From contig NW_005434593.1 in assembly GCF_000315625.1 (NCBI RefSeq), forward strand, positions 1 to 56,408: a stretch of DNA of 56,408 nt, written 5' to 3'. This stretch comes from Guillardia theta CCMP2712 (lineage: Eukaryota > Protista > Cryptophyta). This document shows, piece after piece, positions 14,428-33,930 of the stretch. The notes beneath the pieces were generated by a model. That model was not told the DNA's origin and searched no databases. It saw only the letters and a list, made by a program, of their open reading frames with translations. Each line of letters begins with the position of its first letter. Position 1 is the stretch's first letter. Made by a program: the position numbers and the translations under genes.

Positions 14428-17400
14428 TCAAGCTGAGCCTCCTGAAGCCACGTCATCTTGCCATCTCCTCTCCCTCTTCCTCCCTCTTCCTCCCTCTTCC
14501 TCCCTCCCTCTTCCTCTGTCTCTTCCCCTCCCCCCGCCCCTCCTCTTTATCTTTCTCTTCCTCACCTGGAGCCCCTGGAGCTCCCGCAGCTCCCTGCAGC
14601 AGCTCTCAGTCACCAGCCTCCTCCTCTCCCTCCACATCATCTTCCCACTCCTCTCTCTCTCTCCTCCTCATGCCCCATCATCTTCGTCCTCCTCCTCTAC
14701 CTGCGGCCCCCTCACTCCCGGCCGGCCCGGCGGCCCTTGCGGTCCGTCCTGGGCAGTCTCTCCACGAGCTCCAATCGGGCCCGGCAGGCCCGGCAGGCCC
14801 GGCATCCCTACAGCCCGTCAGTGACCCGTCCAGCTCTACTGCACTCTTCCAGCTCACCGTGAGCTCCCACCACTCCCGGCGCCCCGGTCTCCCCGGTCGG
14901 GCCCCGGGCTCCCGGTGGGCCTGGTGGGCCCGGAGGTCCCTGGAGTTCTCAGTCAGGCCTTAGGAGAAGCCCAGCAGCAGACCCACCTGTGGCCCAGCCT
15001 TCCCCTCCGCTCCTTCCTTCCCTGGTACCCCGTCCTTGCCCGCAGCTCCTGCATCACCAGGCGCTCCAGTGCGTCCTCGGGGGCCCGGGTAGCCTGCAAC
15101 CCAACGGTCAGCACTGCCGGTGGGCTGCAGCTGGGGGAGGAGACCTGGCGGTCCCTTGGGCCCATCCAGCCCAGGGCGTCCTGGAAGACCGTCTGGGGGA
15201 GGAGTCAGGAAGTGACTTCGACGCCTCCTCCTCCTCCCTCACCCTTCCCGTCCGAGCCGTTGAGACCTGCAGGCTCGCCAAGGTCAGCTACAGCCCAGCA
15301 GGGGGAGGAAGCTGGACGTCACCTGGGGATCCAGCGGGACCCATCGGGCCTCGGGGTCCTCGCACGCCAATGGGACCGGTCACCCCCTGCCGCAGGAGGG
15401 CGTCAGGCGGCGAACTCAAGAGCTAGGCTCCTGCTGGGGACTCACCCTCGGACCAGGTAGTCCAGTTGGACCCCTCACTCCTGGGACTGAGGTGGAAAGT
15501 CACTCACAGCTGGGAATGGAGGGGGAGGGGAGGGGGTTGGGGTGGTTGGGAGGTTCGGGGGGTTCCGTGTGCCCTACCTGCGACGCCATAAGCTGGTTTC
15601 CCCCTGTACCCGCGGGGACCTGGCGGGCCTGCGAGAAAGTCAAACTTGAAGCCCAAGGGCAGAGGAGGAAGAGAGAGAAGGAGGGAGCGGGAAGGAGTGG
15701 GAGGAAGATCAAGGAAGAGAGGAGAGGGAAGTGTAAAGACGCGGAAAGAGGGGGAGGGAACAACCGGGGAGAGTGAAGGGAGCGAGGGGAGGGGAAGGAT
15801 GAAGACATCGAGGGGGAGAGTACACCTGGGGGGCCGGGTAGTCCAGGATCTCCTCGCTGCCCTCGAGACTTCCTTATGCGTCGCACCATCCTCTTCAAGT
15901 CCTCGTGCTGTCTCTCAAGGTCTGCCATGGCGATCAGTCGCGTGCGAGGAGGAGCGGGTGACGACCTTCGACTGTGTCCTTCTCACTCTGATAGTCCTCC
16001 TTGGTGTTCTCTAGCTGCTTCGCCAGCCCCGTCACCTCTGGGAGTAGCTGCTCAACCTGCCAGTCCACGTCACTGCCAGGGGGAGGGACGACGAGGAGGG
16101 AGGGAGAGGAGGGCGAAGGAAGAGGGAGGGAAGGGAGAGGGAGGGAGAGGGAGGGAGGGAGAGGGAGGGAGGGAGAGGATTGAGAGGTTATGCGAGGGAT
16201 GGAAGGCGGAGGCTAGTCTGCAGCACCTTCGAGATGCTGTCTGCAGTCTGCTGCTCCCTTGCCATCACCAGCTCTGCTTCCTGTGCTCAGCATCAGCCAC
16301 CGTACTCTTCCCCCTCCTTCTCCTGAGCCTCCCAGCACCTCAGGGCTCAGGGTCACATGCAGAGTGCCGGAGAGAACGTAGTTGCCCAGGTCCTTGGTCA
16401 CCGAGACACAGGGAGAGCCTGTCGCCATCTTCAGCCTCCCCCAACCGTCCTTCACCTCACACTCTTCAGCTCCACCCTAGTCCCCCCCCCCCCCCCACCG
16501 ACTCCTCCACAATCCTTTCAGCCTCCCTCTCCCCTGATCTTCCCACCCCCTCCCCTCCTCCCTCGTATCCCAACCTGACATTCATCCCCTTCCTTCCACT
16601 CTCCCACGAATGCCTCCCGCTCCCTCCCTCCTTCACCCTCAGCTCCATCTACCGGGACAAGGCTTCGAGGACTCCTCGGACTCGTTCTCCTCCTCTCCTT
16701 CCTCTTCTCCGCTGTCGCTCTTGCTCGCCCCCTCAGTCTCGCTGCTCTCCTCCGCCTCCTCGGCAAGTTTCTACAAGACGTCAGGACTCGCTCGATCCAC
16801 CAACAACCTCCACCTGCGCTGCTGCAGCCGCACTCTCTGCCTTCCTGACGTTGCTCATGCTCGCCTTGTGCGCTGGGTCTGATGTCACAACGAGAATCGT
16901 GGGTGAGGAGGAGGAGAATGAACAAGGGGAGGGAGGAGCAACAACTTGGAAGGAAAGGAGGGAGCAGGAAAAGGAAGGAGGGAGCAGGGAAAGGAAGGAG
17001 GGAGGAGGAGGCGGAAGGGAGGAGGAGAAGTTGAAGAGGAGAAAGAGTAGGACCGATTGTTGCGAGCGTCTTGTGAGCTCGTGCAGTGCTGTGCTGGCGG
17101 TGAGCTGGGAGGAGGTGAGCTGGGGGTCAGAGGAAGAGGAGGAACGGCAACCATGAATGCTCTTGAGGCTCTTGGAAGGAGAATGAGAAAGGAGAGCCTC
17201 TCTCTCTACAGGATGAGACATCTGCTGCATAGCAACTTCAGAAAGGAGATAGCAGGTAACTAGAGGAGGCAGCAGGTGGCTAGAGAGAGGGAGCAAGTGG
17301 CAGGTGGGACTGGTGGAGCTACCGAAGTCTGGAACGCTACAACGAGGGCGATGGCGGCGATTGCACCAACGATGATCCCGATGTACCTGGAGGACAAGAT

Positions 17401-17805
17401 GTCAAAGAAGAGAGAAAGAGAGGAGGAGAACTTCAGATACATCCTCCTCGCCGCTCCTGACTTGTGCAGTAGTGACGTGCTGTCACTCGGAGCCTCATGG
17501 GACGACGGGAACCTGCGGGCACGTATGAGAGGATGGAGGAGCGTTGGAGGAGATTGGCAGAGGGAGAGAGAGAGAGGACAGGAGAGAAGAAGCAGAAAAC
17601 CAGAGAGAGGAGGCGGGGGTGGTGTTAAGTGGATCTGTAAGGAGGAGGAGGAGGAGGAGGAGGAGGAGGAGGAGGAGGAGGAGGAGGAGGAGGAGGAGGA
17701 GNNNNNNNNNNNNNNNNNNNNNNNNNNNNNNNNNNNNNNNNNNNNNNNNNNNNNNNNNNNNNNNNNNNNNNNNNNNNNNNNNNNNNNNNNNNNNNNNNNN
17801 NGAGG

Positions 17806-17838
<33 letters not shown>

Positions 17839-17968
17839 TGCAGGAGCAGGGGCAGCAGCAGCAGGAGGAGGAGCAGCAGCAGGAGGAGGAGCAGGAGCAG
17901 GAGCAGGAGCTGAGTGCTGGCGGGGATTGTTGAGCTGCCATTTACCAGTTTCCCATCGTCGTCGCCAT
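14428..17968 (-). CDS. Collagen-like (Gly-X-Y) protein with N-terminal membrane anchor and short coiled coil, multi-exon
   Basis: Spliced reading: MATTMGNW|FPSSHEAPSDSTSLLHKSGAARRM|YIGIIVGAIAAIALVVAFQTS (TM) ... MADLERQHEDLKRMVRRIRKSRGQRGDPGLPGPPG|PPGPRGYRGKP...|PGVRGPTGLPGPR|GVTGPIGVRGPRGPMGPAGSPG...|GAAGAPGAPG|GSA*, with canonical GT-AG boundaries. Confidence 0.8.
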
Positions 17969-17989
17969 GAAGAGTCGCGGGACTCGAAA

Positions 17990-18128
17990 GGTGGGGGTAC
18001 TCCTAGGCCAGAAGTAGGGGTATGCGTGACTTTCGCAAAGGAGGGTAGGGTAGTCACAGTACCCCCTATAATCCTATGGATTCAAAGGACAATAGGAGGT
18101 ACCTGACATGAGGGGTAGGGTAGGGGTG
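17990..18128. promoter_or_regulatory. GGGTA-motif cluster in a divergent intergenic region
   Basis: GGGGTAC, GGGGTATG, GGGTAGGGTAG, GTACCCCC and GGGGTAGGGTAGGGGTG immediately upstream of the minus-strand ATG at 17968. Confidence 0.4.
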
Positions 18129-18603
18129 ATGACGAGAGCGAAAATTGGATGAACGCAATCAGAATGGTGACAATACAGTGACGAGAAACGGAGAAGGGAG
18201 AGGAGGAGAGGAGAGGAGAGGAGAGGAGAGGAGAGGAGAGGAGAGAAGATGGCAGAGTCGAAGTGAGAGGGAGAAACAGGTCAACGCAGAGAGAAGGGCA
18301 GGAGAGGGAAATGCATTACAAAGATTGAGATCGAGGTCGAGTATGATCAGCTCTGCTCGACTCTGATCACAAGGGGATTGGCAAGGCCAAGAGAAGTGCA
18401 TGAAGGAATCTTTTGCGATTATCAAGAATCGTGGCAGTCTGGATTGATCATGAGGATGGGAAGGCAGGCATTTACCTCTGACTGTGCTGTTGTCGTGTAC
18501 GTGATGACTGTCAATATGCTAAACACGTTGACGTCAGGGTCACTAAGGATGTCTGAGGGAATCAGACGAGACTAGCACTGCTCGCCTCCTCGACACACAC
18601 AAG

Positions 18604-20090
18604 ATGTACCAACAGGCAGCTGCCGATGAATCCAAGAGATCCAGTCGTGGCATGCTCGCGCTGCTGTCGGCCTTGGTGCTGCTGGTGGGGGATGCGCTCT
18701 AGTGGGTTCAAGGCAAGACCTGGGGCAGGCGAGTCTTCCGTCCTGCTCCTCCTGTCACGCTGACGAGAGATGGCATGGCAGGGGCTGGTGCTGCTGGAGC
18801 AGGGGAACCGAGGGAGGGTGCTTGCGATAGAAAGGACGTCCAACGAGCTGAAGAAGAAAGCAAAGATCGAGGACGAGCGAGCAAGGGCGCTGAGGAAGCA
18901 GGTGCTGGGTCTAGCAGGAAGAGGAGGAGGAGGAGGAGGAGGAGGAGGAGGAGGAGGAGGAGGAGGAGGAGGAGGAGGAGATCACTGACGAGCTGCAGGC
19001 CAACATCGACTACGACAAGGCAGAGGAGCTGCTCAAGGACGTTGGGATCACGACGCACTGGGTGGGGCAGATGGCGAGGGAGGAGGCGTCGCTGAGCGAG
19101 GAGATGAGGATGGATAAGGAGAACATCAAGGAGGACAAGAGGAAGCTGCTGCACGTGAGAGCGAACATGCGGCTGAGCAGGGGAGGAGGCGGGATGACAT
19201 GGCGGCAGGTGGAAGTGCTCAAGAAGGAGATCGCGAAGCTAAAGTCTGTCCTGCAAGAGAGGCAGAAGAAGCTCGATGCCTCCAAGCAGCTCCTCGCCTC
19301 TACTCGCAGTGACCTGCTCCGGGACCAGCGGCGGCATCAGGCGCAGGAGAAGAACGTGGCAAGGCTGCTGCATCAGGCCGATACCTTTGCGGACGAGGCG
19401 GAGAAGTCGTTGAAGCGATCGCAGCAGCTGCGCCTGTCGTCGGAGTCCTCGTTCAAGGACCAGGCCTCCGAGGAGACGGCGGCCGACGACTTCCAGAAGG
19501 CCAACAAGCTCAAGAGAGCGTCCTCGGTCGACACCAGGAAGGCGCTAGACGCGCGTTCCAAGGCTCGTCTCGGCCAGGTCTGCTCGCCTGCCCGACTGAC
19601 GTCGGAGCTTACGGGGCGCAGGAGTACGTGGCGATGCTGAAACAGATGGTTGCTAAGGAGCGGAGGGACGTGGCGGTGGACCGAAAGCTGAGGGACCAGG
19701 ACGTTGCCGGTGCGAGCAAGGTAACTCGTCGTCCTCTGAGCCCTCTGAGCCTCCGCTGAGACCTCAAGCAGGAGCAGTCGGCGGTGGACCGCCTGCTCAA
19801 GGAGGAGAAGCAGCTGTCAAGACCCTCCCTGCTGGCAGAGGAGGCGGCGACCAAGTCAGACCTCGTGAAGGTGCAGGAGCGGCTCAAGGAGGAGGAGGCT
19901 GCGGTGAGGGAGAAGGAGGCGAGAGGGTCCAGTGACCCCCCAGCAGGTGACGCACAAGCAGACGGAGGCGAAGAGGGAGCAGCTGAGGGCGATGCACCTG
20001 CTGCACATGTCCCACAAGCTGCAGGGAAAGGCGGCCGACGCGCTCGCGGCCTCGACCAAGACCATTCAGATGGAGGAGAAGGAGGCGTGA
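18604..20090 (+). CDS. Multi-exon coiled-coil protein with N-terminal signal/anchor
   Basis: MYQQAAADESKRSSRGMLALLSALVLL, then exons SNELKKKAKIEDERARALRKQ, VEVLKKEIAKLKSVLQERQKKLDASKQLL... and AVDRLLKEEKQL...; ends MEEKEA* at 20090. Introns are short GT-AG. Confidence 0.7.
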
Positions 20091-20523
20091 GCAGCCGAGG
20101 GAGGAGAGGGGAGGAGGAGAGGGGAGGAGGAGGAGAGGAGACGACGCTGAGAGAATGAAGGAGAGGAGCGAGGAAGGGTGATGAGTCAACTTTAGTGAAT
20201 AGATGAGAGTAAGACGGGTGAGTTTGTTTGGGCTCTAGACTCGATGATAGGCTGCTATGTAGCTGCCAACTGCAACTCGAGCAAGATTCCCGCATTCTAC
20301 AGCTGCATCACTGTTGACAGCCGCAGTTTTGATTGTTGTACGAATACTTGGAAGTCTCATAGTGTTTTGACACCATGGACCTGAACCGGGAATGTATCAA
20401 TCAGTCAAACTTGGCTGTAAGAGACAGAAGGTGGCCGGGCAGGATATCGCTTCGAGCATCTCCACGATTATACGTTTTTATTGCGTTAATGTTTGCTCTA
20501 ATCTACATGAGTGTCTTTCGAGT

Positions 20524-20835
20524 CTACAAGACTAGGCCTTCGCCAGTCGCTGAGATGACCTCAGGTCGGTCTTTGTCTTCAATCAATCTGATTGAATGCA
20601 CAAGCGCCTCCAGTTGTTTGCTTCTTGACGGGCAGCCGTAAAGCTCCCGTCGGCCTTCCTCGGATAGCGGAAGGATCGCTTTGGAGTGGCTCGCTCTATC
20701 TTGATACTTGATCTCTGCTTGGACCCTCCTGGACACGTCCCGGAAAGATGAAGCATCTGCTCTATCAGCATGCTCGTCGAAGCTTGCCAAGGAGAGGTCA
20801 GGGAAGCTGGGTTGTTGGTCTACCTCGAGGTTCAT
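20524..20835 (-). CDS. Array ORF-A copy 1, 103 aa orphan
   Basis: ATG-to-TAG ORF of identical length in all six units; AATAAA on the minus strand ~40 nt past the stop (20477-20482). Confidence 0.5.
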   Translation of the reverse strand: MNLEVDQQPSFPDLSLASFDEHADRADASSFRDVSRRVQAEIKYQDRASHSKAILPLSEEGRRELYGCPSRSKQLEALVHSIRLIEDKDRPEVISATGEGLVL

Positions 20836-21530
20836 CGCTGCTCTTCACTCTTGGGGGAGTAGCTTGACAGGGAAGATGCTTTGAGTGTCGGCCGGCTGCT
20901 GGGCGGGGAGATGAAGCACAAGGAGACTGACTCGTGCTGGGGAGAGAGGCGGGGGGTTGGGTTGCAGTATCTCTTCTCATCCCGTCCTGATAAAGCAGCA
21001 AGAGGGTGCGTTCTTTGCCTAGATCGACAGGTTGTGTAGTAATCGGTTTCAACTCATGGAGTCACGTACCGAGTAGGAATAAAGTCATGCTTCGACAATG
21101 TAAAGGTCATGGCCGCCCCATCGATACGATGCGATCTTGAGTCGGCGTTGACGTGCGAGGAAGCCAAGGGAGCTGCTTTCCGGGAGGCGCTGCAATCCTC
21201 AACGGCATCCGTGACCTCCCCGGTCATCGAGCTCTTCGATCCGATGCGAATGATCTTCCATGGTCTTCTATTCGATCAGTCGAAGGCATGACCATGGCAT
21301 GATCTTGTCAGCAGCTCCTCCGCCTGCCCGCCATCCGATGCGTAAGCCCGTCCCCCTGCTTCAGTCCCATCCAACCGTTGCGATTCTCAGTCACTTCCCG
21401 ACCTGCCTCCACCTCGTTGCCCCTTACAAGAGCCTTCGCTCCGCCTCGCGCTCAATCCTCCGCACCTGCCCCCCTCCCCTCTCGTCCTCCTCCCAGTACC
21501 CCCCGCCCTCTCCTGAGCCCTCGCCCCGTC

Positions 21531-21860
21531 ATGTCTTCCTCCTCCCACGACTGGCAAGCCTCCCTCGTCCCCCTCGTCCCTCCCCTCCCGCCCCAGACGG
21601 CCCCGCTGCTTCGCGTCTACCTTGTGCTGGCGGTGGGCATGCTGGCGGGGCTGGCCGGCGCTCTCGCGCAGGGAGTCGCCTGGCTCCTGCAAGACGACGG
21701 CATCGACTCCCCCGACGCTCTGGACTCTTGTCTCCGGCTCCCGTCGGCCCCCCGCCCGGACGCCGAGCGGGCGAGGAGCCATGGCGGCTTCGACAGGCGG
21801 AGGCTGCAGCAGCCGCACTTCAACCAGACCTTCAGGGTCAGGCGCGTCGGCGTCGTCTAG
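21531..21860 (+). CDS. Array ORF-B copy 1, 109 aa single-TM orphan
   Basis: MSSSSHDWQ...LLRVYLVLAVGMLAGLAGALAQGVAWLL...FRVRRVGVV*; GC-rich third codon positions; AATAAA ~38 nt downstream. Confidence 0.55.
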   Translation: MSSSSHDWQASLVPLVPPLPPQTAPLLRVYLVLAVGMLAGLAGALAQGVAWLLQDDGIDSPDALDSCLRLPSAPRPDAERARSHGGFDRRRLQQPHFNQTFRVRRVGVV

Positions 21861-22524
21861 GCAGGCGTCGCCATGTACACTAGGCAGCCATGTAGAGTAA
21901 TAAACCGCACCACATGACCTCAGTCGCCTCGCGCGTCCTGGCGGAGTCAGCGGGGGAAGGGGAGGAAGAGAGGAGGAGCAAGAGAAGGGAGGGGCAAGAG
22001 CGTGGGGCGGAGAGTCAATAGAAGAAGGAGGAAAGAGACGAGGAGGGAGTCGGCACTGGCGCGAGGAGGCTTGTAGGTGCTGGAAGATGGGGATCAGGAC
22101 AGGAGGAGGGGGGCGAATCTTGCATCATCACACTCACTGTCATGGGTGCATCGTGGTGTTGGGTAGGATGTGCTTGCATGCTGTTGGTGCTGGAGCTTGC
22201 TGAGCGAGATGAGGTCTCGCCTACCTCCTTCGCATCACAGGATTGCACTCCAAGGCGTGTATGGTTGGATCTGTATGCATGTGCTGCAATCATCATGTGA
22301 TAGATCGTCAAGCATCATCACATGTTGAGAGTTGATGAGAGAGACTTTTGCTTGAGAGCCGGTCATTGTGTCTCTCTCGATGTAGACTAGCAGCAGTGTA
22401 GACTACGTGTAGAGCTGCTCTCTGCCAGAAACTGGCCGGGCAGGATATCGCTTCGAGCATCTCCACGATTATATGTTTTCATTGCGTTAATGTTTGCTCT
22501 AATCTACATGAGTGTCTTTCGAGT

Positions 22525-22836
22525 CTACAAGACTAGGCCTTCGCCAGTCGCTGAGATGACCTCAGGTCGGTCTTTGTCTTCAATCAATCTGATTGAATGC
22601 ACAAGCGCCTCCAGTTGTTTGCTTCTTGACGGGCAGCCGTAAAGCTCCCGTCGGCCTTCCTCGGATAGCGGAAGGATCGCTTTGGAGTGGCTCGCTCTAT
22701 CTTGATACCTGATCTCTGCTTGGACCCTCCTGGACACGTCCCGGAAAGATGAAGCATCTGCTCCATCAGCATGCTCGTCGAAGCTTGCCAAGGAGAGGTC
22801 AGGGAAGCTGGGTGGATGGTCTACCTCGAGGTTCAT
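22525..22836 (-). CDS. Array ORF-A copy 2
   Basis: Same 103 aa frame, substitutions only. Confidence 0.5.
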   Translation of the reverse strand: MNLEVDHPPSFPDLSLASFDEHADGADASSFRDVSRRVQAEIRYQDRASHSKAILPLSEEGRRELYGCPSRSKQLEALVHSIRLIEDKDRPEVISATGEGLVL

Positions 22837-23533
22837 CGCTGCTCTTCACTCTTGGGGGAGTAGCTTGACAGGGAAGATGCTTTGAGTGTCGGCCGGCTGC
22901 TGGGCGGGGAGATGAAGCACAAGGAGACTGACTCGTGCTGGGGAGAGAGGCGGGGGGTTGGGTTGCAGTCTCTCTTCTCATCCCGTCCTGATAAAGCAGC
23001 GAGAGGATGCGTTCTTTACCTAGATCGACAGGTTGTGGAGTAATCGATTTCAACTCATGGAGTCACGTACCGAGTAGGAATAAAGTCATGCTTCGACAAT
23101 GTAAAGGTCATGGCCGTCCCATCGATACGATGCGATCTTGAGTCGGCGTTGACGTGCGAGGAAGCCAAGGGAGCTGCTTTCCGGGAGGCGCTGCAATCCT
23201 CAACGGCATCCGTGACCTCCCCGGTCATCGAGCTCTTCGATCCGATGCGAATGATTCTATTCGATCAGTCGAAGGCATGACCATGGCATGATCTTGTCAG
23301 CAACTCCTTCGCCTGCCCGCCATCCGATGCGTAAGCCCGTCCCCCTGCTTCAGTCCCATCCATCCTTTTGCGTTTCTGCGTCACTCCCCGACGTGCCTCA
23401 CCCGCATGACCGGCGGGGGGGCTCGTTGCCCCTTACAAGAGCCTTCGCTCCGCCTCCCTCCTCCACACCTGCCCCCCTCCCCTCTCGTCCTCCACCCAGT
23501 ACCCCCCGCCCTCTCCTGAGCCCTCGCCCCGTC

Positions 23534-23863
23534 ATGTCTTCCTCCTCCCACGACTGGCAAGCCTCCCTCGTCCCCCTCGTCCCTCCCCTCCCGCCCCAGA
23601 CGGCCCCGCTGCTTCGCGTCTACCTTGTGCTGGCGGTGGGCATGCTGGCGGGGCTGGCCGGCGCTCTCGCGCAGGGAGTCGCCTGGCTCCTGCAAGACGA
23701 CGGCATCGACTCCCCCGACGCTCTGGACTCTTGTCTCCGGCTCCCGTCGGCCCCCCGCCCGGACGCCGAGCGGGCGAGGAGCCATGGCGGCTTCGACAGG
23801 CGGAGGCTGCAGCAGCCGCACTTCAACCAGACCTTCAGGGTCAGGCGCGTCGGCGTCGTCTAG
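23534..23863 (+). CDS. Array ORF-B copy 2
   Basis: Same 109 aa frame. Confidence 0.55.
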   Translation: MSSSSHDWQASLVPLVPPLPPQTAPLLRVYLVLAVGMLAGLAGALAQGVAWLLQDDGIDSPDALDSCLRLPSAPRPDAERARSHGGFDRRRLQQPHFNQTFRVRRVGVV

Positions 23864-24527
23864 GCAGGCGTCGCCATGTACACTAGGCAGCCATGTAGAG
23901 TAATAAACCGCACCACATGACCTCAGTCGCCTCGCGCGTCCTGGCGGAGTCAGCGGGGGAAGGGGAGGAAGAGAGGAGGAGCAAGAGAAGGGAGGGGCAA
24001 GAGCGTGGGGCGGAGAGTCAATAGAAGAAGGAGGAAAGAGACGAGGAGGGAGTCGGCACTGGCGCGAGGAGGCTTGTAGGTGCTGGAAGATGGGGATCAG
24101 GACAGGAGGAGGGGGGCGAATCTTGCATCATCACACTCACTGTCATGGGTGCATCGTGGTGTTGGGTAGGATGTGCTTGCATGCTGTTGGTGCTGGAGCT
24201 TGCTGAGCGAGATGAGGTCTCGCCTACCTCCTTCGCATCACAGGATTGCACTCCAAGGCGTGTATGGTTGGATCTGTATGCATGTGCTGCAATCATCATG
24301 TGATAGATCGTCAAGCATCATCACATGTTGAGAGTTGATGAGAGAGACTTTTGCTTGAGAGCCGGTCATTGTGTCTCTCTCGATGTAGACTAGCAGCAGT
24401 GTAGACTACGTGTAGAGCTGCTCTCTGCCAGAAACTGGCCGGGCAGGATATCGCTTCGAGCATCTCCACGATTATATGTTTTCATTGCGTTAATGTTTGC
24501 TCTAATCTACATGAGTGTCTTTCGAGT

Positions 24528-24839
24528 CTACAAGACTAGGCCTTCGCCAGTCGCTGAGATGACCTCAGGTCGGTCTTTGTCTTCAATCAATCTGATTGAA
24601 TGCACAAGCGCCTCCAGTTGTTTGCTTCTTGACGGGCAGCCGTAAAGCTCCCGTCGGCCTTGCTCGGATAGCGGAAGGATCGCTTTGGAGTGGCTCGCTC
24701 TATCTTGATACCTGATCTCTGCTTGGACCCTCCTGGACACGTCCCGGAAAGATGAAGCATCTGCTCCATCAGCATGCTCGTCGAAGCTTGCCAAGGAGAG
24801 GTCAGGGAAGCTGGGTGGATGGTCTACCTCGAGGTTCAT
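24528..24839 (-). CDS. Array ORF-A copy 3
   Basis: Same 103 aa frame. Confidence 0.5.
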   Translation of the reverse strand: MNLEVDHPPSFPDLSLASFDEHADGADASSFRDVSRRVQAEIRYQDRASHSKAILPLSEQGRRELYGCPSRSKQLEALVHSIRLIEDKDRPEVISATGEGLVL

Positions 24840-25548
24840 CGCTGCTCTTCACTCTTGGGGGAGTAGCTTGACAGGGAAGATGCTTTGAGTGTCGGCCGGC
24901 TGCTGGGCGGGGAGATGAAGCACAAGGAGACTGACTCGTGCTGGGGAGAGAGGCGGGGGGTTGGGTTGCAGTCTCTCTTCTCATCCCGTCCTGATAAAGC
25001 AGCGAGAGGATGCGTTCTTTACCTAGATCGACAGGTTGTGGAGTAATCGATTTCAACTCATGGAGTCACGTACCGAGTAGGAATAAAGTCATGCTTCGAC
25101 AATGTAAAGGTCATGGCCGCCCCATCGATACGATGCGATCTTGAGTCGGCGTTGACGTGCGAGGAAGCCAAGGGAGCTGCTTTCCGGGAGGCGCTGCAAT
25201 CCTCAACGGCATCCGTGACCTCCCCGGTCATCGAGCTCTTCGATCCGATGCGAATGATCTTCCATGGTCTTCTATTCGATCAGTCGAAGGCATGACCATG
25301 GCATGATCTTGTCAGCAACTCCTTCGCCTGCCCGCCATCCGATGCGTAAGCCCGTCCCCCTGCTTCAGTCCCATCCATCCGTTTGCGTTTCTCAGTCACT
25401 CCCCGACGTGCCTCACCCGCATGACCGGCGGGGGGGCTCGTTGCCCCTTACAAGAGCCTTCGCTCCGCCTCCCTCCTCCACACCTGCCCCCCTCCCCTCT
25501 CGTCCTCCACCCAGTACCCCCCGCCCTCTCCTGAGCCCTCGCCCCGTC

Positions 25549-25878
25549 ATGTCTTCCTCCTCCCACGACTGGCAAGCCTCCCTCGTCCCCCTCGTCCCTC
25601 CCCTCCCGCCCCAGACGGCCCCGCTGCTTCGCGTCTACCTTGTGCTGGCGGTGGGCATGCTGGCGGGGCTGGCCGGCGCTGTGGTCCGGGGGGTCGCCTG
25701 GCTCCTGCAAGACGACGGCATCGACTCCCCCGACGCTCTGGGCTCTTGTCTCCGGCTCCCGTCGGCCCCCCGCCCGGACGCCGAGCGGGCGAGGAGCCAT
25801 GGCGGCTTCGACAGGCGGAGGCTGCAGCAGCCGCACTTCAACCAGACCTTCAGGGTCAGGCGCGTCGGCGTCGTCTAG
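25549..25878 (+). CDS. Array ORF-B copy 3 (AVVRGV allele)
   Basis: Same 109 aa frame. Confidence 0.55.
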   Translation: MSSSSHDWQASLVPLVPPLPPQTAPLLRVYLVLAVGMLAGLAGAVVRGVAWLLQDDGIDSPDALGSCLRLPSAPRPDAERARSHGGFDRRRLQQPHFNQTFRVRRVGVV

Positions 25879-26527
25879 GCAGGCGTCGCCATGTACACTA
25901 GGCAGCCATGTAGAGTAATAAACCGCACCACATGACCTCAGTCGCCTCGCGCGTCCTGGCGGAGTGAGCGGGGGAAGGGGAGGAAGAGAGGAAGAGGAAG
26001 AGGAAGAAGGAGCAAGAGCGTGGGGCGGAGAGTCAATAGAAGAAGGAGGAAAGAGACGAGGAGGGAGTCGGCACTGGCGCGAGGAGGCTTGTAGGTGCTG
26101 GAAGATGGGGATCAGGACAGGAGGAGGGGGGCGAATCTTGCATCATCACACTCACTGTCATTGTTTGGGTAGGATGTGCTTGCATGCTGTTGGTGCTGGA
26201 GCTTGCTGAGCGAGATGAGGTCTCGCCTACCTCCTTCGCATCACAGGATTGCACTCCAAGGCGTGTGTGGTTGGATCTGTATGTATGTGTTGCAATCATC
26301 ATGTGATAGATCGTCAAGCATCATCACATGTTGAGAGTTGATGAGAGAGACTTTTGCTTGAGAGCCTGTCATTGTGTCTCTCTCGATGTAGACTAGCAGT
26401 GTAGACTACGTGTAGAGCTGCTCTCTGCCAGAAACTGGCCGGGCAGGATATCGCTTCGAGCATCTCCACGATTATACGTTTTCATTGCGTTAATGTTTGT
26501 TCTAATCTACATGAGTGTCTTTCGAGT

Positions 26528-26839
26528 CTACAAGACTAGGCCTTCGCCAGTCGCTGAGATGACCTCAGGTCGGTCTTTGTCTTCAATCAATCTGATTGAA
26601 TGCACAAGCGCCTCCAGTTGTTTGCTTCTTGACGGGCAGCCGTAAAGCTCCCGTCGGCCTTCCTCGGATAGCGGAAGGATCGCTTTGGAGTGGCTCGCTC
26701 TATCTTGATACTTGATCTCTGCTTGGACCCTCCTGGACACGTCCCGGAAAGATGAAGCATCTGCTCTATCAGCATGCTCGTCGAAGCTTGCCAAGGAGAG
26801 GTCAGGGAAGCTGGGTTGTTGGTCTACCTCGAGGTTCAT
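26528..26839 (-). CDS. Array ORF-A copy 4
   Basis: Same 103 aa frame; protein identical to copy 1. Confidence 0.5.
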   Translation of the reverse strand: MNLEVDQQPSFPDLSLASFDEHADRADASSFRDVSRRVQAEIKYQDRASHSKAILPLSEEGRRELYGCPSRSKQLEALVHSIRLIEDKDRPEVISATGEGLVL

Positions 26840-27517
26840 CGCTGCTCTTCACTCTTGGGGGAGTAGCTTGACAGGGAGGATGCTTTGAGTGTCGGCCGGC
26901 TGCTGGACGGGGAGGTGAAGCACAAGGAGACTGACTCGTGCTGGGGAGAGAGGCGGGGGGTTGGGTTGCAGTCTCTCTACCATCCCGTCCTTATAATGCC
27001 AGGAGGTTCAAAGTGAGAGGATGCGTTCTTTGCCCAGTGGAAGGTGAGGGGGTAGGGGTGCCTCTACTGTACCGGATTCCTCCATGTCGCGGAGGAGATC
27101 GACAGGGTGGGTAGTGTCAACTCATATAGTCACGTACCTAGTCGAGTGAAGTCATGCTTCGACAACGAAGAGGTCATGGCCGTCCCATCGAAAGGGTGCG
27201 AGATTCAGTCGGAGTAGACATGCCAAGATGCCAAGCGATCTGATTATCTCTCCCCGGTCATCGAGCTCTTCGATCCGATGCGATTGATCGTCAAGACGAC
27301 AGCGTGACCTAGTCAGCAACCCCTTCCCATGGGCGTTCGCAAGTCTCCCGTCCAAGCACTCCCCGACGTGCCTCACCCGCGTGACCGGCGGGGGGCCTCG
27401 TTGCCCCTTACAAGAGCCTTCGCTCCGCCTCCCGCTCCCTCCTCCGCACCTGCCTCTTCCTGACCCTCTCGTCCTCCTCCCAGTAGCCCCCGCCCTCTCC
27501 TGAGCCCTCGCCCCGTC

Positions 27518-27847
27518 ATGTCCTCCTCCTCCCACGACTGGCAAGCCCCCCTCGTCCCCCTCGTCCCTCCCCTCCCGCCCCTGACGGCCCCGCTGCTTCG
27601 CGTCTACCTCGTGCTGGCGGTGGGCATGCTGGTGGGGCTGGCCGGCGCTGTGGTCCGGGGGGTCGCCTGGCTCCTGCAAGACGACGGCATCGACTCCCCC
27701 GACGCTCTGGGCTCTTGTCTCCGGCTCCTGTCGGCCCCCCGCCCGGACGCCGAGCGGGCGAGGAGCCATGGCGGCTTCGACAGGCGGAGGCTGCAGCAGC
27801 CGCACTTCAACCAGACCTTCAGGGTCAGGCGCGTCGGCGTCGTCTAG
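27518..27847 (+). CDS. Array ORF-B copy 4 (most divergent; AVVRGV allele)
   Basis: Same 109 aa frame, with synonymous (TCT>TCC, CTT>CTC) and non-synonymous changes. Confidence 0.55.
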   Translation: MSSSSHDWQAPLVPLVPPLPPLTAPLLRVYLVLAVGMLVGLAGAVVRGVAWLLQDDGIDSPDALGSCLRLLSAPRPDAERARSHGGFDRRRLQQPHFNQTFRVRRVGVV

Positions 27848-28505
27848 GCAGGCGTCGCCATGTACACCAGGCAGCCATGTAGAGTAATAAACCGCACCAC
27901 ACGACCACAGTCGCCTCGCGCGTCCTGGCGGAGTCAGCGAGGGAAGGGGAGGAAGAGAGGAGGAGCAAGAGAAGGGAGGGGCAAGAGCGGGGAGCGGAGA
28001 GTCGAAAGAAGAAGGAGGAAAGAGACGAGGAGGGAGTCGGCACTGGCGAGGAGGCTTGTAGGTGCTGGAAGATGGGGATCAGGACAGGAGGAGAGGGGCG
28101 AATCTTGCATCATCACACCCACTGTCATGGGTGCATCGTGGTGTTGGGCAGGAGGTGCTTGCATGCTGTTGGTGCTGGAGCTTGCTGAGCGAGATGAGGT
28201 CTCGCCTACCTCCTTCGCATGACAGGATTGCACTTCAAGGCGTGTATGGTTGGATCTGTATGCATGTGCTGCAATCATCATGTGATAGATCGTCAAGCAT
28301 CATCACATGTTGAGAGTTGATGAGAGAGACTTTTGCTTGAGAGCCGGTCATTGTGTCTCTCTCGATGTAGACTAGCACTGTAGACTACGTGTAGAGCTCT
28401 CTCTGCCAGAAACTGGCCGGGCAGGATATCGCTTCGAGCATCTCCACGATTATACGTTTTTATTGCGTTAATGTTTGTTCTAATCTACATGAGTGTCTTT
28501 CGAGT

Positions 28506-28817
28506 CTACAAGACTAGGCCTTCGCCAGTCGCTGAGATGACCTCAGGTCGGTCTTTGTCTTCAATCAATCTGATTGAATGCACAAGCGCCTCCAGTTGTT
28601 TGCTTCTTGACGGGCAGCCGTAAAGCTCCCGTCGGCCTTGCTCGGATAGCGGAAGGATCGCTTTGGAGTGGCTCGCTCTATCTTGATACTTGATCTCTGC
28701 TTGGACCCTCCTGGACACGTCCCGGAAAGATGAAGCATCTGCTCTATCAGCATGCTCGACGAAGCTTGCCAAGGAGAGGTCAGGGAAGCTGGGTTGATGG
28801 TCTACCTCGAGGTTCAT
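28506..28817 (-). CDS. Array ORF-A copy 5
   Basis: Same 103 aa frame. Confidence 0.5.
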   Translation of the reverse strand: MNLEVDHQPSFPDLSLASFVEHADRADASSFRDVSRRVQAEIKYQDRASHSKAILPLSEQGRRELYGCPSRSKQLEALVHSIRLIEDKDRPEVISATGEGLVL

Positions 28818-29505
28818 CGCTGCTCTTCACTCTTGGGGGAGTAGCTTGACAGGGAGGATGCTTTGAGTGTCGGCCGGCTGCTGGACGGGGAGGTGAAGCA
28901 CAAGGAGACTGACTCGTGCTGGGGAGCGAGGCGGGGGGTTGGGTTGCAGTCTCTCTTCTCATCCCGTCCTGATAAAGCCACGAGGTTCAAAGTGAGAGGA
29001 TGCGTTCTTTGCCCAGTGGAAGGTGAGGGGGTAGGGGTGCCTCTACTGTACCGGATTCCTCCATGTCGCGGAGGAGATCGACAGGGTGGGTGGTGTCAAC
29101 TCATATAGTCACGTACCTAGTCGAGTGAAGTCATGCTTCGACAACGAAGAGGTCATGGCCGTCCCATCGATACGGTGCGAGATTCAGTCGGAGTAGACAT
29201 GCCAAGGTGCCAAGCGGTCTGATTTTCTTGCATCCGTGACCTCCCCGGTCATCGAGCTCTTCGACTCGATGCGATTGATCGTCAAGACGACAGCGTGACC
29301 TAGTCAGCAACCCCTTCCCATGTGCGTTCGCATGTCTCCCGTCCTAGCACTCCCCGACGTGCCTCCCCCGCGTGACCCGCGGGTGACCTCGTTGCCCCTT
29401 ACAAGAGCCTTCGCTCCGCCTCCCGCTCCATCCTCCGCGCCTGCCCCCCTCCCCTCTCGTCCTCCTCCCAGTACCCCCCGCCCTCTCCTGAGCCCTCGCC
29501 CCGTC

Positions 29506-29835
29506 ATGTCCTCCTCCTCCCACGACTGGCAAGCCTCCCTCGTCCCCCTCGTCCCTCCCCTCCCGCCCCAGACGGCCCCGCTGCTTCGCGTCTACCTTGT
29601 GCTGGCGGTGGGCATGCTGGCGGGGCTGGCCGGCGCTCTCGCGCAGGGGGTCGCCTGGCTCCTGCAAGACGACGGCATCGACTCCCCCGACGCTCTGGGC
29701 TCTTGTCTCCGGCTCCCGTCGGCCCCCCGCCCGGACGCCGAGCGGGCGAGGAGCCATGGCGGCTTCGACAGGCGGAGGCTGCAGCAGCCGCACTTCAACC
29801 AGACCTTCAGGGTCAGGCGCGTCGGCGTCGTCTAG
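29506..29835 (+). CDS. Array ORF-B copy 5
   Basis: Same 109 aa frame. Confidence 0.55.
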   Translation: MSSSSHDWQASLVPLVPPLPPQTAPLLRVYLVLAVGMLAGLAGALAQGVAWLLQDDGIDSPDALGSCLRLPSAPRPDAERARSHGGFDRRRLQQPHFNQTFRVRRVGVV

Positions 29836-30496
29836 GCAGGCGTCGCCATGTACACTAGGCAGCCATGTAGAGTAATAAACCGCACCACATGACCTCAGTC
29901 GCCTCGCGCGTCCTGGCGGAGTCAGCGGGGGAAGGGGAGGAAGAGAGGAGGAGCAAGAGAAGAGAGGAGCAAGAGCGGGGAGCGGAGAGTCGGAAGAAGA
30001 AGCAGATAAGAGATGAGACGAGGGAGTCGGCACTGGCGAGGAGGCTTGTAGGTGCTGGAAGATGGGGATCAGGACAGGAGGAGGGGGGCGAATCTTGCAT
30101 CATAACACCCACTGTCATGGGTGCATCGTGGTGTTGGGTAGGAGGTGCTTGCATGCTGTTGGTGCTGGAGCTTGCTGAGCGAGATGAGGTCTCGCCTACC
30201 TCCTTCGCATGACAGGATTGCACTCCAAGGCGTGTATGGTTGGATCTGTATGTATGTGTTGCAATCATCATGTGATAGATCGTCAAGCATCATCACATGT
30301 TGAGAGTTGATGAGAGAGACTTTTGCTTGAGAGCCTGTCATTGTGTCTCTCTCGATGTAGACTAGCAGTGTAGACTACGTGTAGAGCTGCTCTCTGCCAG
30401 AAACTGGCCGGGCAGGATATCGCTTCGAGCATCTCCACGATTATACGTTTTTATTGCGTTAATGTTTGTTCTAATCTACATGAGTGTCTTTCGAGT

Positions 30497-30808
30497 CTAC
30501 AAGACTAGGCCTTCGCCAGTCGCTGAGATGACCTCAGGTCGGTCTTTGTCTTCAATCAATCTGATTGAATGCACAAGCGCCTCCAGTTGTTTGCTTCTTG
30601 ACGGGCAGCCGTAAAGCTCCCGTCGGCCTTGCTCGGATAGCGGAAGGATCGCTTTGGAGTGGCTCGCTCTATCTTGATACTTGATCTCTGCTTGGACCCT
30701 CCTGGACACGTCCCGGAAAGATGAAGCATCTGCTCTATCAGCATGCTCGTCGAAGCTTGCCAAGGAGAGGTCAGGGAAGCCGGGTTGTTGGTCTATCTCG
30801 AGGTTCAT
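30497..30808 (-). CDS. Array ORF-A copy 6
   Basis: Same 103 aa frame. Confidence 0.5.
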   Translation of the reverse strand: MNLEIDQQPGFPDLSLASFDEHADRADASSFRDVSRRVQAEIKYQDRASHSKAILPLSEQGRRELYGCPSRSKQLEALVHSIRLIEDKDRPEVISATGEGLVL

Positions 30809-31479
30809 CGCTGCTCTTCACTCGTGGGGGAGTAGCTTGACAGGGAAGATGCTTTGAGTGTCGGCCGGCTGCTGGACGGGGAGGTGAAGCACAAGGAGAC
30901 TGACTCGTGCTGGGGAGAGAGGCGGGGGGTTGGGTTGCAGTCTCTCTACCATCCCGTCCTGATAAAGCCACGAGGTTCAAAGTGAGAGGATGCGTTCTTT
31001 GCCCAGTGGAAGGTGAGGGGGTAGGGGTGCCTCTACTGTACCGGATTCCTCCATGTCGCGGAGGAGATCGACAGGGTGGGTGGTGTCAACTCATATAGTC
31101 ACGTACCTAGTCAGAGTGAAGTCATGCTTCGACAACGAAGAGGTCATGGCCGTCCCATCGAAAGGGTGCGAGATTCAGTCGGAGTAGACATGCCAAGGTG
31201 CCAAGCGGTCTGATTTGCTTGCGTTTGATTGTCAGCAACCCCTTCCCATGGGCGTTCGCATGTCTCCCGTCCCAGCACTCCCCGACGTGCCTCCCCCGCG
31301 TGACCCGCGGGTNNNNNNNNNNNNNNNNNNNNNNNNNNNNNNNNNNNNNNNNNNNNNNNNNNNNNNNNNNNNNNNNNNNNNNNNNNNNNNNNNNNNNNNN
31401 NNNNNNNNNNNNNNNNNNNNNNNNNNNNNNNNNNNNNNNNNNNNNNNNNNNNNNNNNNNNNNNNNNNNNNNNNNNNNNN

Positions 31480-31762
31480 CCCTCCCCTCCCGCCCCAGAC
31501 GGCCCCGCTGCTTCGCGTCTACCTTGTGCTGGCGGTGGGCATGCTGGCGGGGCTGGCCGGCGCTCTCGCGCAGGGGGTCGCCTGGCTCCTGCAAGACGAC
31601 GGCATCGACTGCCCCGACGCTCTGGGCTCTTGTCTCCGGCTCCCGTCGGCCCCCCGCCCGGACGCCGAGCGGGCGAGGAGCCATGGCGGCTTCGACAGGC
31701 GGAGGCTGCAGCAGCCGCACTTCAACCAGACCTTCAGGGTCAGGCGCGTCGGCGTCGTCTAG
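31480..31762 (+). CDS. Array ORF-B copy 6 (5' end in gap)
   Basis: Same frame and stop codon; the start falls in the N-run at 31313-31479. Confidence 0.5.
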
Positions 31763-32864
31763 GCAGGCGTCGCCATGTACACTAGGCAGCCATGTAGAGT
31801 AATAAACCGCACCACATGACCTCAGTCGCCTTTCGCGTCCTGGCGGAGTCAGCGGGGGAAGGGGAGGGCGAGAGGAGGAGGTAGGAAAAAGAGCGTGGGG
31901 TTGAGAGTGGGAAGAAGGAGGAAAGAGATGTTGGAGATCGGCACTGGCGCGAGGAGGCTTGTAGGTGCTGTGCGAGGAGCAAGAGAGGATCAGGGCTGGA
32001 GACTCTTGCTACAAGCCAGCCGTCGCATGTTTTTTGCTTTCTTTCTCCTGCTGCCTGTCCAAGAGGGAGAGACCTTGTAAGGCGAGGATGGTCGTGAGGT
32101 GATATGTCAGCATGTTGTCTTGTTGGAGGAAGGGACGGTTGTTCTATCAGATTTCTTGGACTGACACCAGACACCAGATGTCTTCCAGATCAGAGATGCT
32201 ATTTCAACAGCATAAGCTACATCGCTCAGTTGAAATGTTGACGTCTGGCATCGACAAACTTGCTAAGGTTTTGTGGTGGAGTATGAAGCAGGGAGGAACA
32301 TGTTCACAGCGATGTTTATGATGCTTTTCTTGTTTAATAATGAGACAATCTGATCTTCTTTACCAGGGGCGGTTGTCGAGGTCAGAGTTCCATGAGGGCC
32401 AAGTGCCGTTGAAGGCAAGGGGGAGCTGCTCATGCTGCAGACAAGACCGTTAGCACCAGCCATGCTTTCATTCCCTTCCCCTCTTCCTCCTCCTCCCCCT
32501 TCCGCTTCCATCTTCCTCTCCTTCTCCTTGTTATGATTGACTCACATGCTGATACTCCTGACGCCACATCCACAAAGTCTGAAACATTTTGATTGTCTGT
32601 GGAAGAATCAGTCAGGGAAAATTACAGCTTTCAGGCATATAACACTGTCGGACTGTTTTCTAATCAGCAGCTGCTGTCTAGAAAACAGTCCTGTGACTTC
32701 AATTTAATCCCTCTGCTCAATTCAGCCCTATCTCTCTTCATTGTTCCCTATTTTCTTCACCAAACATCTTCGGTTGGTGCTTTTGACGCGAATTCCTCTA
32801 CCTCCCGCACGAACTTTTTCTTACATCGCCTTTCGACGCCTCCTCACCTACCCTTCCAACTCCC

Positions 32865-33128
32865 TAGCTCTCCCCCTAGCTCTCCCTCCTCTTCATCTCC
32901 CTCCTCTTCATCTCCCTCCTCTTCATCTTCCTCCTCTAGCCCTCCCTCCTCTTCATCATCTTCCTCCTCTTCATCTCCCTCCTCTTCATCTTCCTCCTCT
33001 AGCCCTCCCTCCTCTTCATCATCTTCCTCCTCTTCATCTCCCTCCTCTTCATCTTCCTCCTCTAGCTCTCCCTCCTCTTCATCTTCTTCCTCTTCATCTC
33101 CCTCCTCTTCATCTTCTTCCTCTTCTTC
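32865..33128. repeat. Compound minisatellite (TCTCCCTCCTCTTCA-type 15-mers with higher-order repeats)
   Basis: Repeated TCTTCATCTCCCTCC / TCTTCCTCCTCTAGC units; reads as an acidic DEEEG repeat on the minus strand. Confidence 0.85.
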
Positions 33129-33930
33129 GCACAGGTCCCTCACCTTTTTCTTGCTCCTCGCTTTCGCGCTTCTCCTTTTATCTTGACTAAAAAAGATCTA
33201 TTTCCGGCATCACCAAATCCGTCCACTAGAACAACTTTACAAGTTGGCCCTCCGACTCAGTAACCTGGTCCGGCCCCCGGACTCGGCCGGCGTGCCGGGC
33301 CCGGCCTGACGGGCCAGTGACTTAACACTTTGAGTAAAGTGGCCCAGTGCCACCGGCCCAGTGCACGACTCCGGGCCCGGGAATTCCCCTGAGGCCGGCC
33401 GCCGGCAGGGTGACTGAGGAGCCGCCGGGGCAGGGAAACGGTTGAACGATTCCGCTAGTCGCCGCCTACTCAGTCGGACTCGTTGCCGCATGGACTGACC
33501 GGAACCGTCACAAGTCACTGGGCAAGAAGTAGAGTTGTGTGTATTTCATGCTCCTCCTATCTCCTCTCCCTCCCCTCCTCATCCTCTTTCTCCTCCTCCT
33601 CCCGCCGCTCCCCTCCCTCCCCTTCTCCTCCTCCTCCCTCCCCTTCTCCTCCTCCTCCCTCCCCCTGTACTTGGTTTTCTGTATCCCTGTCCCTCTCATC
33701 CTGCTCCTCCTCTCGCCTCTCTTCTTGTTTGTCCGTCGTTTGTTTTCCCTGCTCCTTCAAGGTGACCAGTTAGCCCAACATGATTGACCTTCAACCAATC
33801 CTCCCTCTCCCTCCCCTTCCTCCTCCCACCCGCAACTCTTTCCCTCCTCCCTCTCCCTCCTCTCCCTCCTCTTCATTGCTCCACCCACAACTCTCACTGC
33901 AAACTCTCCTCCTCCCTTCTCCTCACCTCC

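Follow-up and report, generated by a model that had tools for sequence, protein, structure and literature searches.

The 56,408-nucleotide (nt) window analysed here comprises bases 1-56408 of scaffold JH993045.1 (GCA_000315625.1) of the cryptophyte Guillardia theta CCMP2712, record and window coordinates being equal. At 20425-31970 it carries a tandem array of a segment of about 2.0 kb, each copy of which holds two small open reading frames (ORFs) placed head to head, ORF-A on the minus strand with 103 amino acids (aa) and ORF-B on the plus strand with 109 aa. An earlier interpretation made from the letters alone (the sequence-only reading) had described this region as a six-fold array of a ~2-kb cassette for two small orphan proteins, and had proposed a co-amplified functional pair, such as a toxin/antidote-like module, a membrane protein with a soluble partner, or captured viral or mobile genes. 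The array was confirmed when unit 2 was compared with the window by BLAST, which returned five full units and a truncated sixth, and thus six A-B pairs, each arranged head to head, with five spacers between them. The full units start at 20425, 22426, 24429, 26429 and 28407, and the truncated unit occupies 30398-31970, its end corresponding to about unit position 1660. Direct-repeat analysis in six registers gave direct repeats with start-to-start spacings of 2001, 2003, 2000, 1978 and 1991. No unit-like sequence was found by BLAST in the rest of the window and the flanks of the array are unrelated to the unit, as is the case for head-to-tail repeats with unique borders.

The six ORF-A copies, each of 103 aa on the minus strand, lie at 20524..20835, 22525..22836, 24528..24839, 26528..26839, 28506..28817 and 30497..30808, and the fourth is identical in DNA to the first. 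The plus-strand ORF-B, of 109 aa with one hydrophobic segment, is found at 21531..21860, 23534..23863 (identical to copy 1), 25549..25878 (protein P0004), 27518..27847 and 29506..29835, all five of which are publicly annotated; the readable part of copy 6 (94 codons and the stop) lies at 31481..31762. The start codons of the two ORFs are separated by about 695 nt in all units, within the limit of 1 kb applied to bidirectional gene pairs; this intergenic region occupies 20836..21530 in unit 1 and the same place in every other unit. The tail-to-tail spacer, which runs from the ORF-B stop to the ORF-A stop of the next unit (21861..22523, five copies), contains short purine-rich microsatellites and no conserved ORF; an antisense ORF of 94-143 aa within it is not conserved, its length being altered by indels. 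No RNA genes were found in the unit with Rfam (at gathering threshold and at E up to 1) or, for tRNA, with ARAGORN. An AATAAA hexamer follows every ORF-B stop at a distance of 39 nt (21899-21904, 23902-23907, 25917-25922, 27886-27891, 29874-29879 and 31801-31806). Forty-two nt past the ORF-A stop the hexamer is AATAAA in copies 1, 5 and 6 (20477-20482, 28459-28464 and 30450-30455) and AATGAA in copies 2-4 (22478-22483, 24481-24486 and 26481-26486), exactly as had been listed earlier. Seven of eight A paralogues and four of seven B paralogues likewise have an AATAAA-type hexamer, and its distance from the stop is 20-77 nt overall.

The scaffold contains several runs of N, of which the one inside the array is the 167 N at 31313..31479 in unit 6. 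The bases on its two sides, 31312 and 31480, correspond to unit-5 positions 978 and 1147, so that 168 bases would be expected between them; unit 4 predicts 172 and the environmental contig L008 predicts 171. Since the expected lengths of 168-172 agree with 167 N, unit 6 is collinear with its sister units and the estimated gap length is off by a few bases at most. Because the gap hides the start codon of ORF-B copy 6 together with its first 15-16 codons, the frame of this copy can be followed only through its 94 readable codons, which are intact.

ORF-A is intact in six of six units and ORF-B in units 1-5. Among the five full units, no indel event occurs in 642 ORF columns against 20 in 1449 non-coding columns, and by our own arithmetic the probability that the ORFs would escape all 20 under a uniform spread is ~6.5e-4. 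Fifteen of these events lie in the A-B intergenic region, where 17% of the columns are variable, and five in the B-to-A spacer (6.4% variable); the corresponding figures for ORF-A and ORF-B are 1.9% and 3.9%, with no indels. The earlier statement that readable copies are free of ORF indels and premature stops and that the spacers are indel-rich is thus borne out. The same pattern appears in an environmental relative of about 5% divergence (ENA contigs L002 and L008): ORF-A is 99.0% identical and gap-free, whereas in the non-coding flanks identity is 90-97% and each compartment has two to seven gap openings; neither ORF carries indels. Against its paralogues, ORF-A has a ratio of non-synonymous to synonymous substitution rates (dN/dS) of 0.25-0.33 in both halves of the protein. 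Within the array, the eight variable codons of ORF-A all fall in codons 5-60, sparing the C-terminal domain (chance ~0.013, own arithmetic).

For ORF-B the coding test is less straightforward, since several frames of this GC-rich stretch are open. Its frame is the sole stop-free one of six in all three comparisons, which involved the environmental paralogue P0005 (contig L004) and two paralogues from another G. theta locus (L007, on JH993108.1), and dN/dS in these comparisons is 0.44-0.64. The three indels that separate ORF-B from P0005 each comprise whole codons, and the GC content is 0.89 at third codon positions (GC3) against 0.51 at second positions (GC2). Antisense ORFs over ORF-B were rejected because they meet stops in the paralogues and the low-dN/dS frame among them merely shares the wobble positions of the sense frame. 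Upstream extensions, which give ORFs of 171-207 aa in some units, were rejected as well, for they differ among units and all paralogues use the start of the 109-aa form. Judged by these comparisons, ORF-A and ORF-B are both true intronless protein-coding genes, as the sequence-only reading had supposed. In G. theta 79% of genes contain introns (PMC6260743); the intronless state is that of a minority, yet it is not exceptional for genes of 100 aa.

Public annotation of the array holds five ORF-B models, all hypothetical proteins, and no ORF-A model. The six ORF-A copies (20524-30808) are therefore missing from it, while the ORF-B copies were already public. ORF-A paralogues elsewhere in the G. 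theta genome do carry annotation. A literature search with the locus tags and the ENA project accession found no paper that mentions a family member.

The ORF-A protein (11.6 kDa, isoelectric point 5.1) is acidic, has no hydrophobic segment by hydropathy analysis and is predicted to be soluble. A short conserved QP[ST]F-x-D motif is located in its N-terminal half, and the C-terminal block contains the invariant or near-invariant elements Y/F-G-C-P, K/R-Q-L-x-A-L and a final A-T-G-x-x-L-x-L. AlphaFold2, supplied with 16 family sequences, gave a mean predicted local distance difference test (pLDDT) score of 69, and 65 in a second model. Confidence is concentrated in residues 61-100 (pLDDT 83-94 as means of 10-residue blocks), and there is little order in the N-terminal half. 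The C-terminal 45 residues are predicted to be compact, with a helix at 59-66, a turn, a helix at 71-86 and a short beta-hairpin. Foldseek searches of PDB with both models and of BFVD with the better one gave no match with E <1 for ORF-A. A winged-helix/LOTUS-like fold was considered and set aside, the best PDB match, a TDRD7 motif, having E = 1.3 and a probability of 0.08.

The ORF-B protein (11.8 kDa, isoelectric point 9.5) contains a single hydrophobic segment, at about residues 26-52, with a Kyte-Doolittle 19-residue maximum of 1.97 at residues 26-44. It is laid out as a conserved N-terminal tag, the membrane segment, an acidic patch and a basic, highly conserved C-terminal motif, and is predicted to be a single-pass membrane protein; the earlier description of one transmembrane segment in ORF-B and a hydrophilic ORF-A holds. 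Profile-profile comparison found ORF-A and ORF-B to be unrelated, and their codon composition differs within one unit (GC3 0.58 in ORF-A, 0.89 in ORF-B). Among the paralogues of each family, GC3 spans 0.43-0.85.

Neither protein belongs to a described family, in agreement with the sequence-only reading. Searches of Pfam, PHROGs, NCBIfam and PADLOC returned nothing at or near threshold for A or B and nothing credible for any family member. PDB sequence profiles matched only a MarR-type regulator for ORF-A (E = 0.06) and only a 'Tet4 variant' without a significant stretch for ORF-B. JGI metagenome contigs contained no relatives of A or of B. Cryptophyte phycoerythrin alpha subunits, ejectisome Tri/Reb proteins, small subunits of the anaphase-promoting complex/cyclosome and RAMP4-type tail-anchored proteins were never among the matches. 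A RING/Not4 zinc finger (zf-RING_4) was rejected for ORF-A, as only the Hanusia phi protein P0011 approached it, with 20.7 bits at residues 43-74 against a cut-off of 27, and the window protein contains a single Cys. Two distant relatives from Hanusia phi, P0011 and P0013, are Cys-rich immediately before the conserved C-terminal block, which hints that the ORF-A family may descend from a zinc-binding domain lost in the Guillardia copies.

The designation of both proteins as orphans stands only in the sense that they have no known domain, for both have paralogues or relatives in Guillardia, Hanusia or close environmental relatives. A profile search of 1.84 billion representatives matched ORF-A to nine proteins only, of 89-132 aa and with E 2e-52 to 1e-4. 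These come from G. theta, GUITHDRAFT_117223 among them, from the Hanusia phi transcriptome and from ENA contigs. Two ENA proteins and GUITHDRAFT_117223 were also the matches of a word search, and a cluster look-up returned the G. theta proteins GUITHDRAFT_114867, GUITHDRAFT_114869, GUITHDRAFT_114870 and GUITHDRAFT_114871 together with seven proteins from the Hanusia phi transcriptome. Because the latter are transcriptome proteins, the family is transcribed in Hanusia. Sixteen sequences align with nine invariant and four near-invariant columns, and the family appears to be restricted to Guillardia and Hanusia, sister genera of Geminigeraceae, and environmental relatives. Like ORF-A, the annotated GUITHDRAFT_117223, GUITHDRAFT_114867/69/70/71 and Hanusia A0A7S0HAF9 have 89-137 aa, the QP[ST]F-x-D motif and the C-terminal block, and the annotated G. 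theta genes resemble the window copies in being intronless and in lying in local tandem clusters. On the other hand, the window ORF-A is only 45-47% identical to the annotated G. theta proteins of the family, and its unannotated copies are the sole members found adjoining an ORF-B gene.

Two further G. theta loci carry ORF-A-family genes, and no ORF-B relatives were found at either. At the first (L001, on JH993071.1), three paralogues lie inside 5.5 kb; an unannotated one is 75% identical to the window ORF-A in protein and ~80% in DNA, and the similarity reaches ~90 nt beyond the stop and ~275 nt upstream. Between paralogues 1 and 2 of this locus there is a 376-nt inverted repeat (6392-6767 and 7012-7387, 98%, with a 244-nt spacer), each arm of which contains a called gene of 94 aa whose product has a hydrophobic segment at the C-terminus; profile-profile comparison found this gene to be unrelated to ORF-B. 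The second locus (L006, on JH993043.1) contains four near-identical copies in direct orientation with spacings of 2286, 1497 and 2577. The fourth copy (12491-12904) has a five-residue C-terminal extension and does not have the AATAAA of the other three.

Relatives of ORF-B are P0005 and P0021 (ENA), P0022 (JGI) and GUITHDRAFT_119337. Eleven sequences align with 11 invariant columns (E 5e-47 to 7e-12), and the family probably consists of single-pass membrane proteins of G. theta and close environmental relatives. None was seen among Hanusia phi proteins, in a search that was word-limited only. The G. theta locus on JH993108.1 (L007), to which GUITHDRAFT_119337 belongs, holds at least six ORF-B-family ORFs inside 10 kb, and no ORF-A relatives were found there. 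Its members share with the window protein an N-terminus of the M-S-S-S-S-H-D-W type, a single hydrophobic segment with W-L-L-[QE]-D-D behind it, a variable linker, the conserved basic C-terminal motif, a length of 107-140 aa and tandem clustering. They differ in being only 36-38% identical to it and in having no ORF-A relative beside them. At 4727-6364 and 7355-8525 of this locus, the public models, 198 and 186 aa long, seem to join what are separate ORFs of the ORF-B family (4727-5149; 7355-7678 and 8151-8525), so that the local annotation may be wrong.

The units of the array are distinguishable, with 85-100% identity by compartment, and their compartments have different histories. Variation is highest in the centre of the intergenic region, which occurs as two subtypes, one in units 1-3 and one in units 4-6, of ~85% identity with many indels. 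Both genes retain a conserved upstream block of their own close to the start; the one next to ORF-A, of ~190 nt, is shared by all units and can be recognised ahead of the first paralogue of the JH993071.1 locus (L001p1). At the position of this centre (~20997-21380 in unit 1) the environmental relative has the unit 4-6 type, and the upstream region of P0005 resembles the unit 1-3 type. Beyond the coding region, P0005 has no more in common with the window unit than part of the upstream sequence on the ORF-B side. The groupings by similarity differ by compartment: ORF-A is identical in units 1 and 4, yet their intergenic centres are 85% identical, and ORF-B is identical in units 1 and 2. The A and B variants are shuffled relative to each other among the units, without co-variation. 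Since zero synonymous differences in ORF-A stand next to 15% divergence, conversion or crossover must have made the coding parts alike, unless it was the intergenic centre that was exchanged. The contigs L002 and L008 of the ~5%-diverged relative each continue from one unit into the following one, which differs slightly from it; L008 also includes the right flank of the array. Because these independent contigs cross unit junctions, the tandem arrangement cannot be blamed on the G. theta assembly.

The sequences show the array with its boundaries, the coding status of its ORFs, their family membership and taxonomic restriction and the independent clusters of each family. The explanation that we prefer, with a probability that we put at roughly 60%, is a fairly young tandem array in which two adjacent lineage-restricted genes have been co-amplified and homogenised with their frames kept, by juxtaposition and not as an obligate two-component system. 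We infer that unequal recombination produced six copies of a 2-kb segment in which a gene of the ORF-A family adjoined one of the ORF-B family, that gene conversion or crossover has since kept the copies similar, and that selection keeps both reading frames intact; co-amplification would have raised the dosage of both genes. The co-amplification seen by the sequence-only reading is thus real, but an obligate pair is not supported. From the loci with A only (three copies at L001, four at L006) and with B only (at least six at L007), it follows that the A-B pairing is particular to the array; among the loci compared it is known only from the window and from the orthologous array of the environmental relative. 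The pairing is most likely a co-amplified juxtaposition because each family amplifies locally on its own.

Several points weigh against this account. The comparison of A-B pairing covers four G. theta loci (JH993045.1, JH993071.1, JH993043.1 and JH993108.1), and it would be improbable for two small lineage-restricted families to adjoin by chance, which hints at a functional or mechanistic link. Substitutions within the array are eight non-synonymous to zero synonymous in ORF-A and 8/3 in ORF-B, so that recent protein-level constraint inside the array is not demonstrated, the differences being too few to test selection. Finally, the coding status of the G. theta copies rests on sequence, and transcription of the family is known from Hanusia.

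The improbable adjacency bears on the idea of a functional partnership in which soluble A would bind a cytosolic part of B, both would be co-regulated from the intergenic region between them, and amplification would keep their amounts matched. The head-to-head arrangement ~695 nt apart in six units, the occurrence of both families within the same narrow lineage, and the sharply conserved terminal motifs in both proteins, of a kind that often mediates binding, would all fit such a partnership. However, a co-regulated bidirectional pair should have a conserved shared intergenic region and conserved pairing among paralogues, and we found neither: conservation within the unit is lowest at the shared centre (17% variable, 15 indels, two subtypes), with only the gene-proximal blocks kept, and each family has clusters of its own. 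The shuffling of A and B variants among units, the very different codon usage (GC3 0.58 and 0.89) and the presence of seven ORF-A representatives in Hanusia phi with zero ORF-B relatives seen there, in the word-limited search, also speak against it, and we regard partnership as possible but rather doubtful. An extension of this idea, which we consider unlikely, is a lineage-specific module in which A would be a soluble adaptor docking on the small membrane protein B, serving a structure specific to Guillardia and Hanusia or acting as a selfish antagonistic pair. If this were true, the two genes would have been amplified together because selection favoured matched dosage, and the clusters with A only or B only would be a store of partners that have diversified. 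A selfish toxin/antidote-like element favouring its own inheritance, one of the possibilities raised by the sequence-only reading, would account for generic traits only, namely small, lineage-restricted, fast-evolving, multi-copy genes of which one encodes a membrane protein. It has no support: the separate A-only (L001, L006) and B-only (L007) clusters argue against obligate linkage, no toxin, antitoxin or defence family was matched, and the relatives of ORF-A are ordinary transcribed genes in Hanusia. Guillardia is not known to have a sexual cycle, which also counts against such an element, and its probability is very small.

Viral capture, or mobile-element cargo multiplied in place, is similarly improbable to an extreme degree, although both genes are intronless where 79% of genes have introns (PMC6260743) and have no relatives beyond the narrow lineage. 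Neither A nor B has relatives among IMG/VR viral contigs, and BFVD gave no significant structural match and PHROGs no match. The unit and the array have no terminal inverted or long terminal repeats around them, only low-complexity purine/pyrimidine tracts; transposase, integrase and capsid ORFs were not found in the unit with Pfam and PHROGs. Moreover, the copies are strictly tandem and local, not dispersed, and the earlier suggestion of captured viral or mobile genes is accordingly not supported. The estimated gap in unit 6, the mostly non-synonymous substitutions within the array and the missing public annotation of ORF-A could be taken to mean that the array is in part an assembly artefact or consists of decaying, non-functional copies. 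But the units differ from one another (85-100% identity by compartment), the gap has the size of a normal unit's segment, independent Illumina contigs of the relative span unit junctions and the right edge of the array, and readable copies contain no stop or frameshift, the spacers taking all 20 indels. This explanation is accordingly quite improbable.

To the left of the array (15549-20090) the record calls a collagen-repeat gene (PF01391) on the minus strand, ending near 17968, followed at 18604-20090 on the plus strand by a 366-aa gene without a domain, rich in GAGGA/AGG microsatellites and in charged sequence resembling a coiled coil. Immediately to the right, a Ser/Pro-rich ORF on the plus strand (32593-33186) contains a tandem repeat at 32876-33125 with a 63-nt period, four copies and 94% matches, alternatively read with a 15-nt period.

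These results document two uncharacterised, taxonomically restricted families of small proteins in the model cryptophyte Guillardia theta, and they correct the annotation of the array locus, from which six ORF-A genes are missing. The array also provides a clean example of coding regions that stay intact and homogenised while the spacers between them diverge. If A and B do work together, it would offer a handle on a cryptophyte-specific cell-biological module. Its present value lies in the annotation fix and in candidates for expression and localisation studies, not in a new kind of system.

Two known kinds of system invite comparison. Toxin-antidote and killer meiotic drive genes of eukaryotes are lineage-restricted, multi-copy, fast-evolving and small, and some encode membrane proteins. 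The array shares these generic traits by analogy, but differs in that there is no homology, no obligate A-B linkage and no sign of drive. Histone repeat units, in which H2A-H2B or H3-H4 genes form divergent pairs in tandem arrays in many eukaryotes, are the other. The array departs from them in having no histone match in Pfam or PDB, in a pairing that is not conserved among paralogues, and in an intergenic centre that is its most variable part. In its architecture, however, it is analogous to a histone unit: two small intronless genes lie head to head in a short tandem unit, and the coding parts are homogenised above the spacers.

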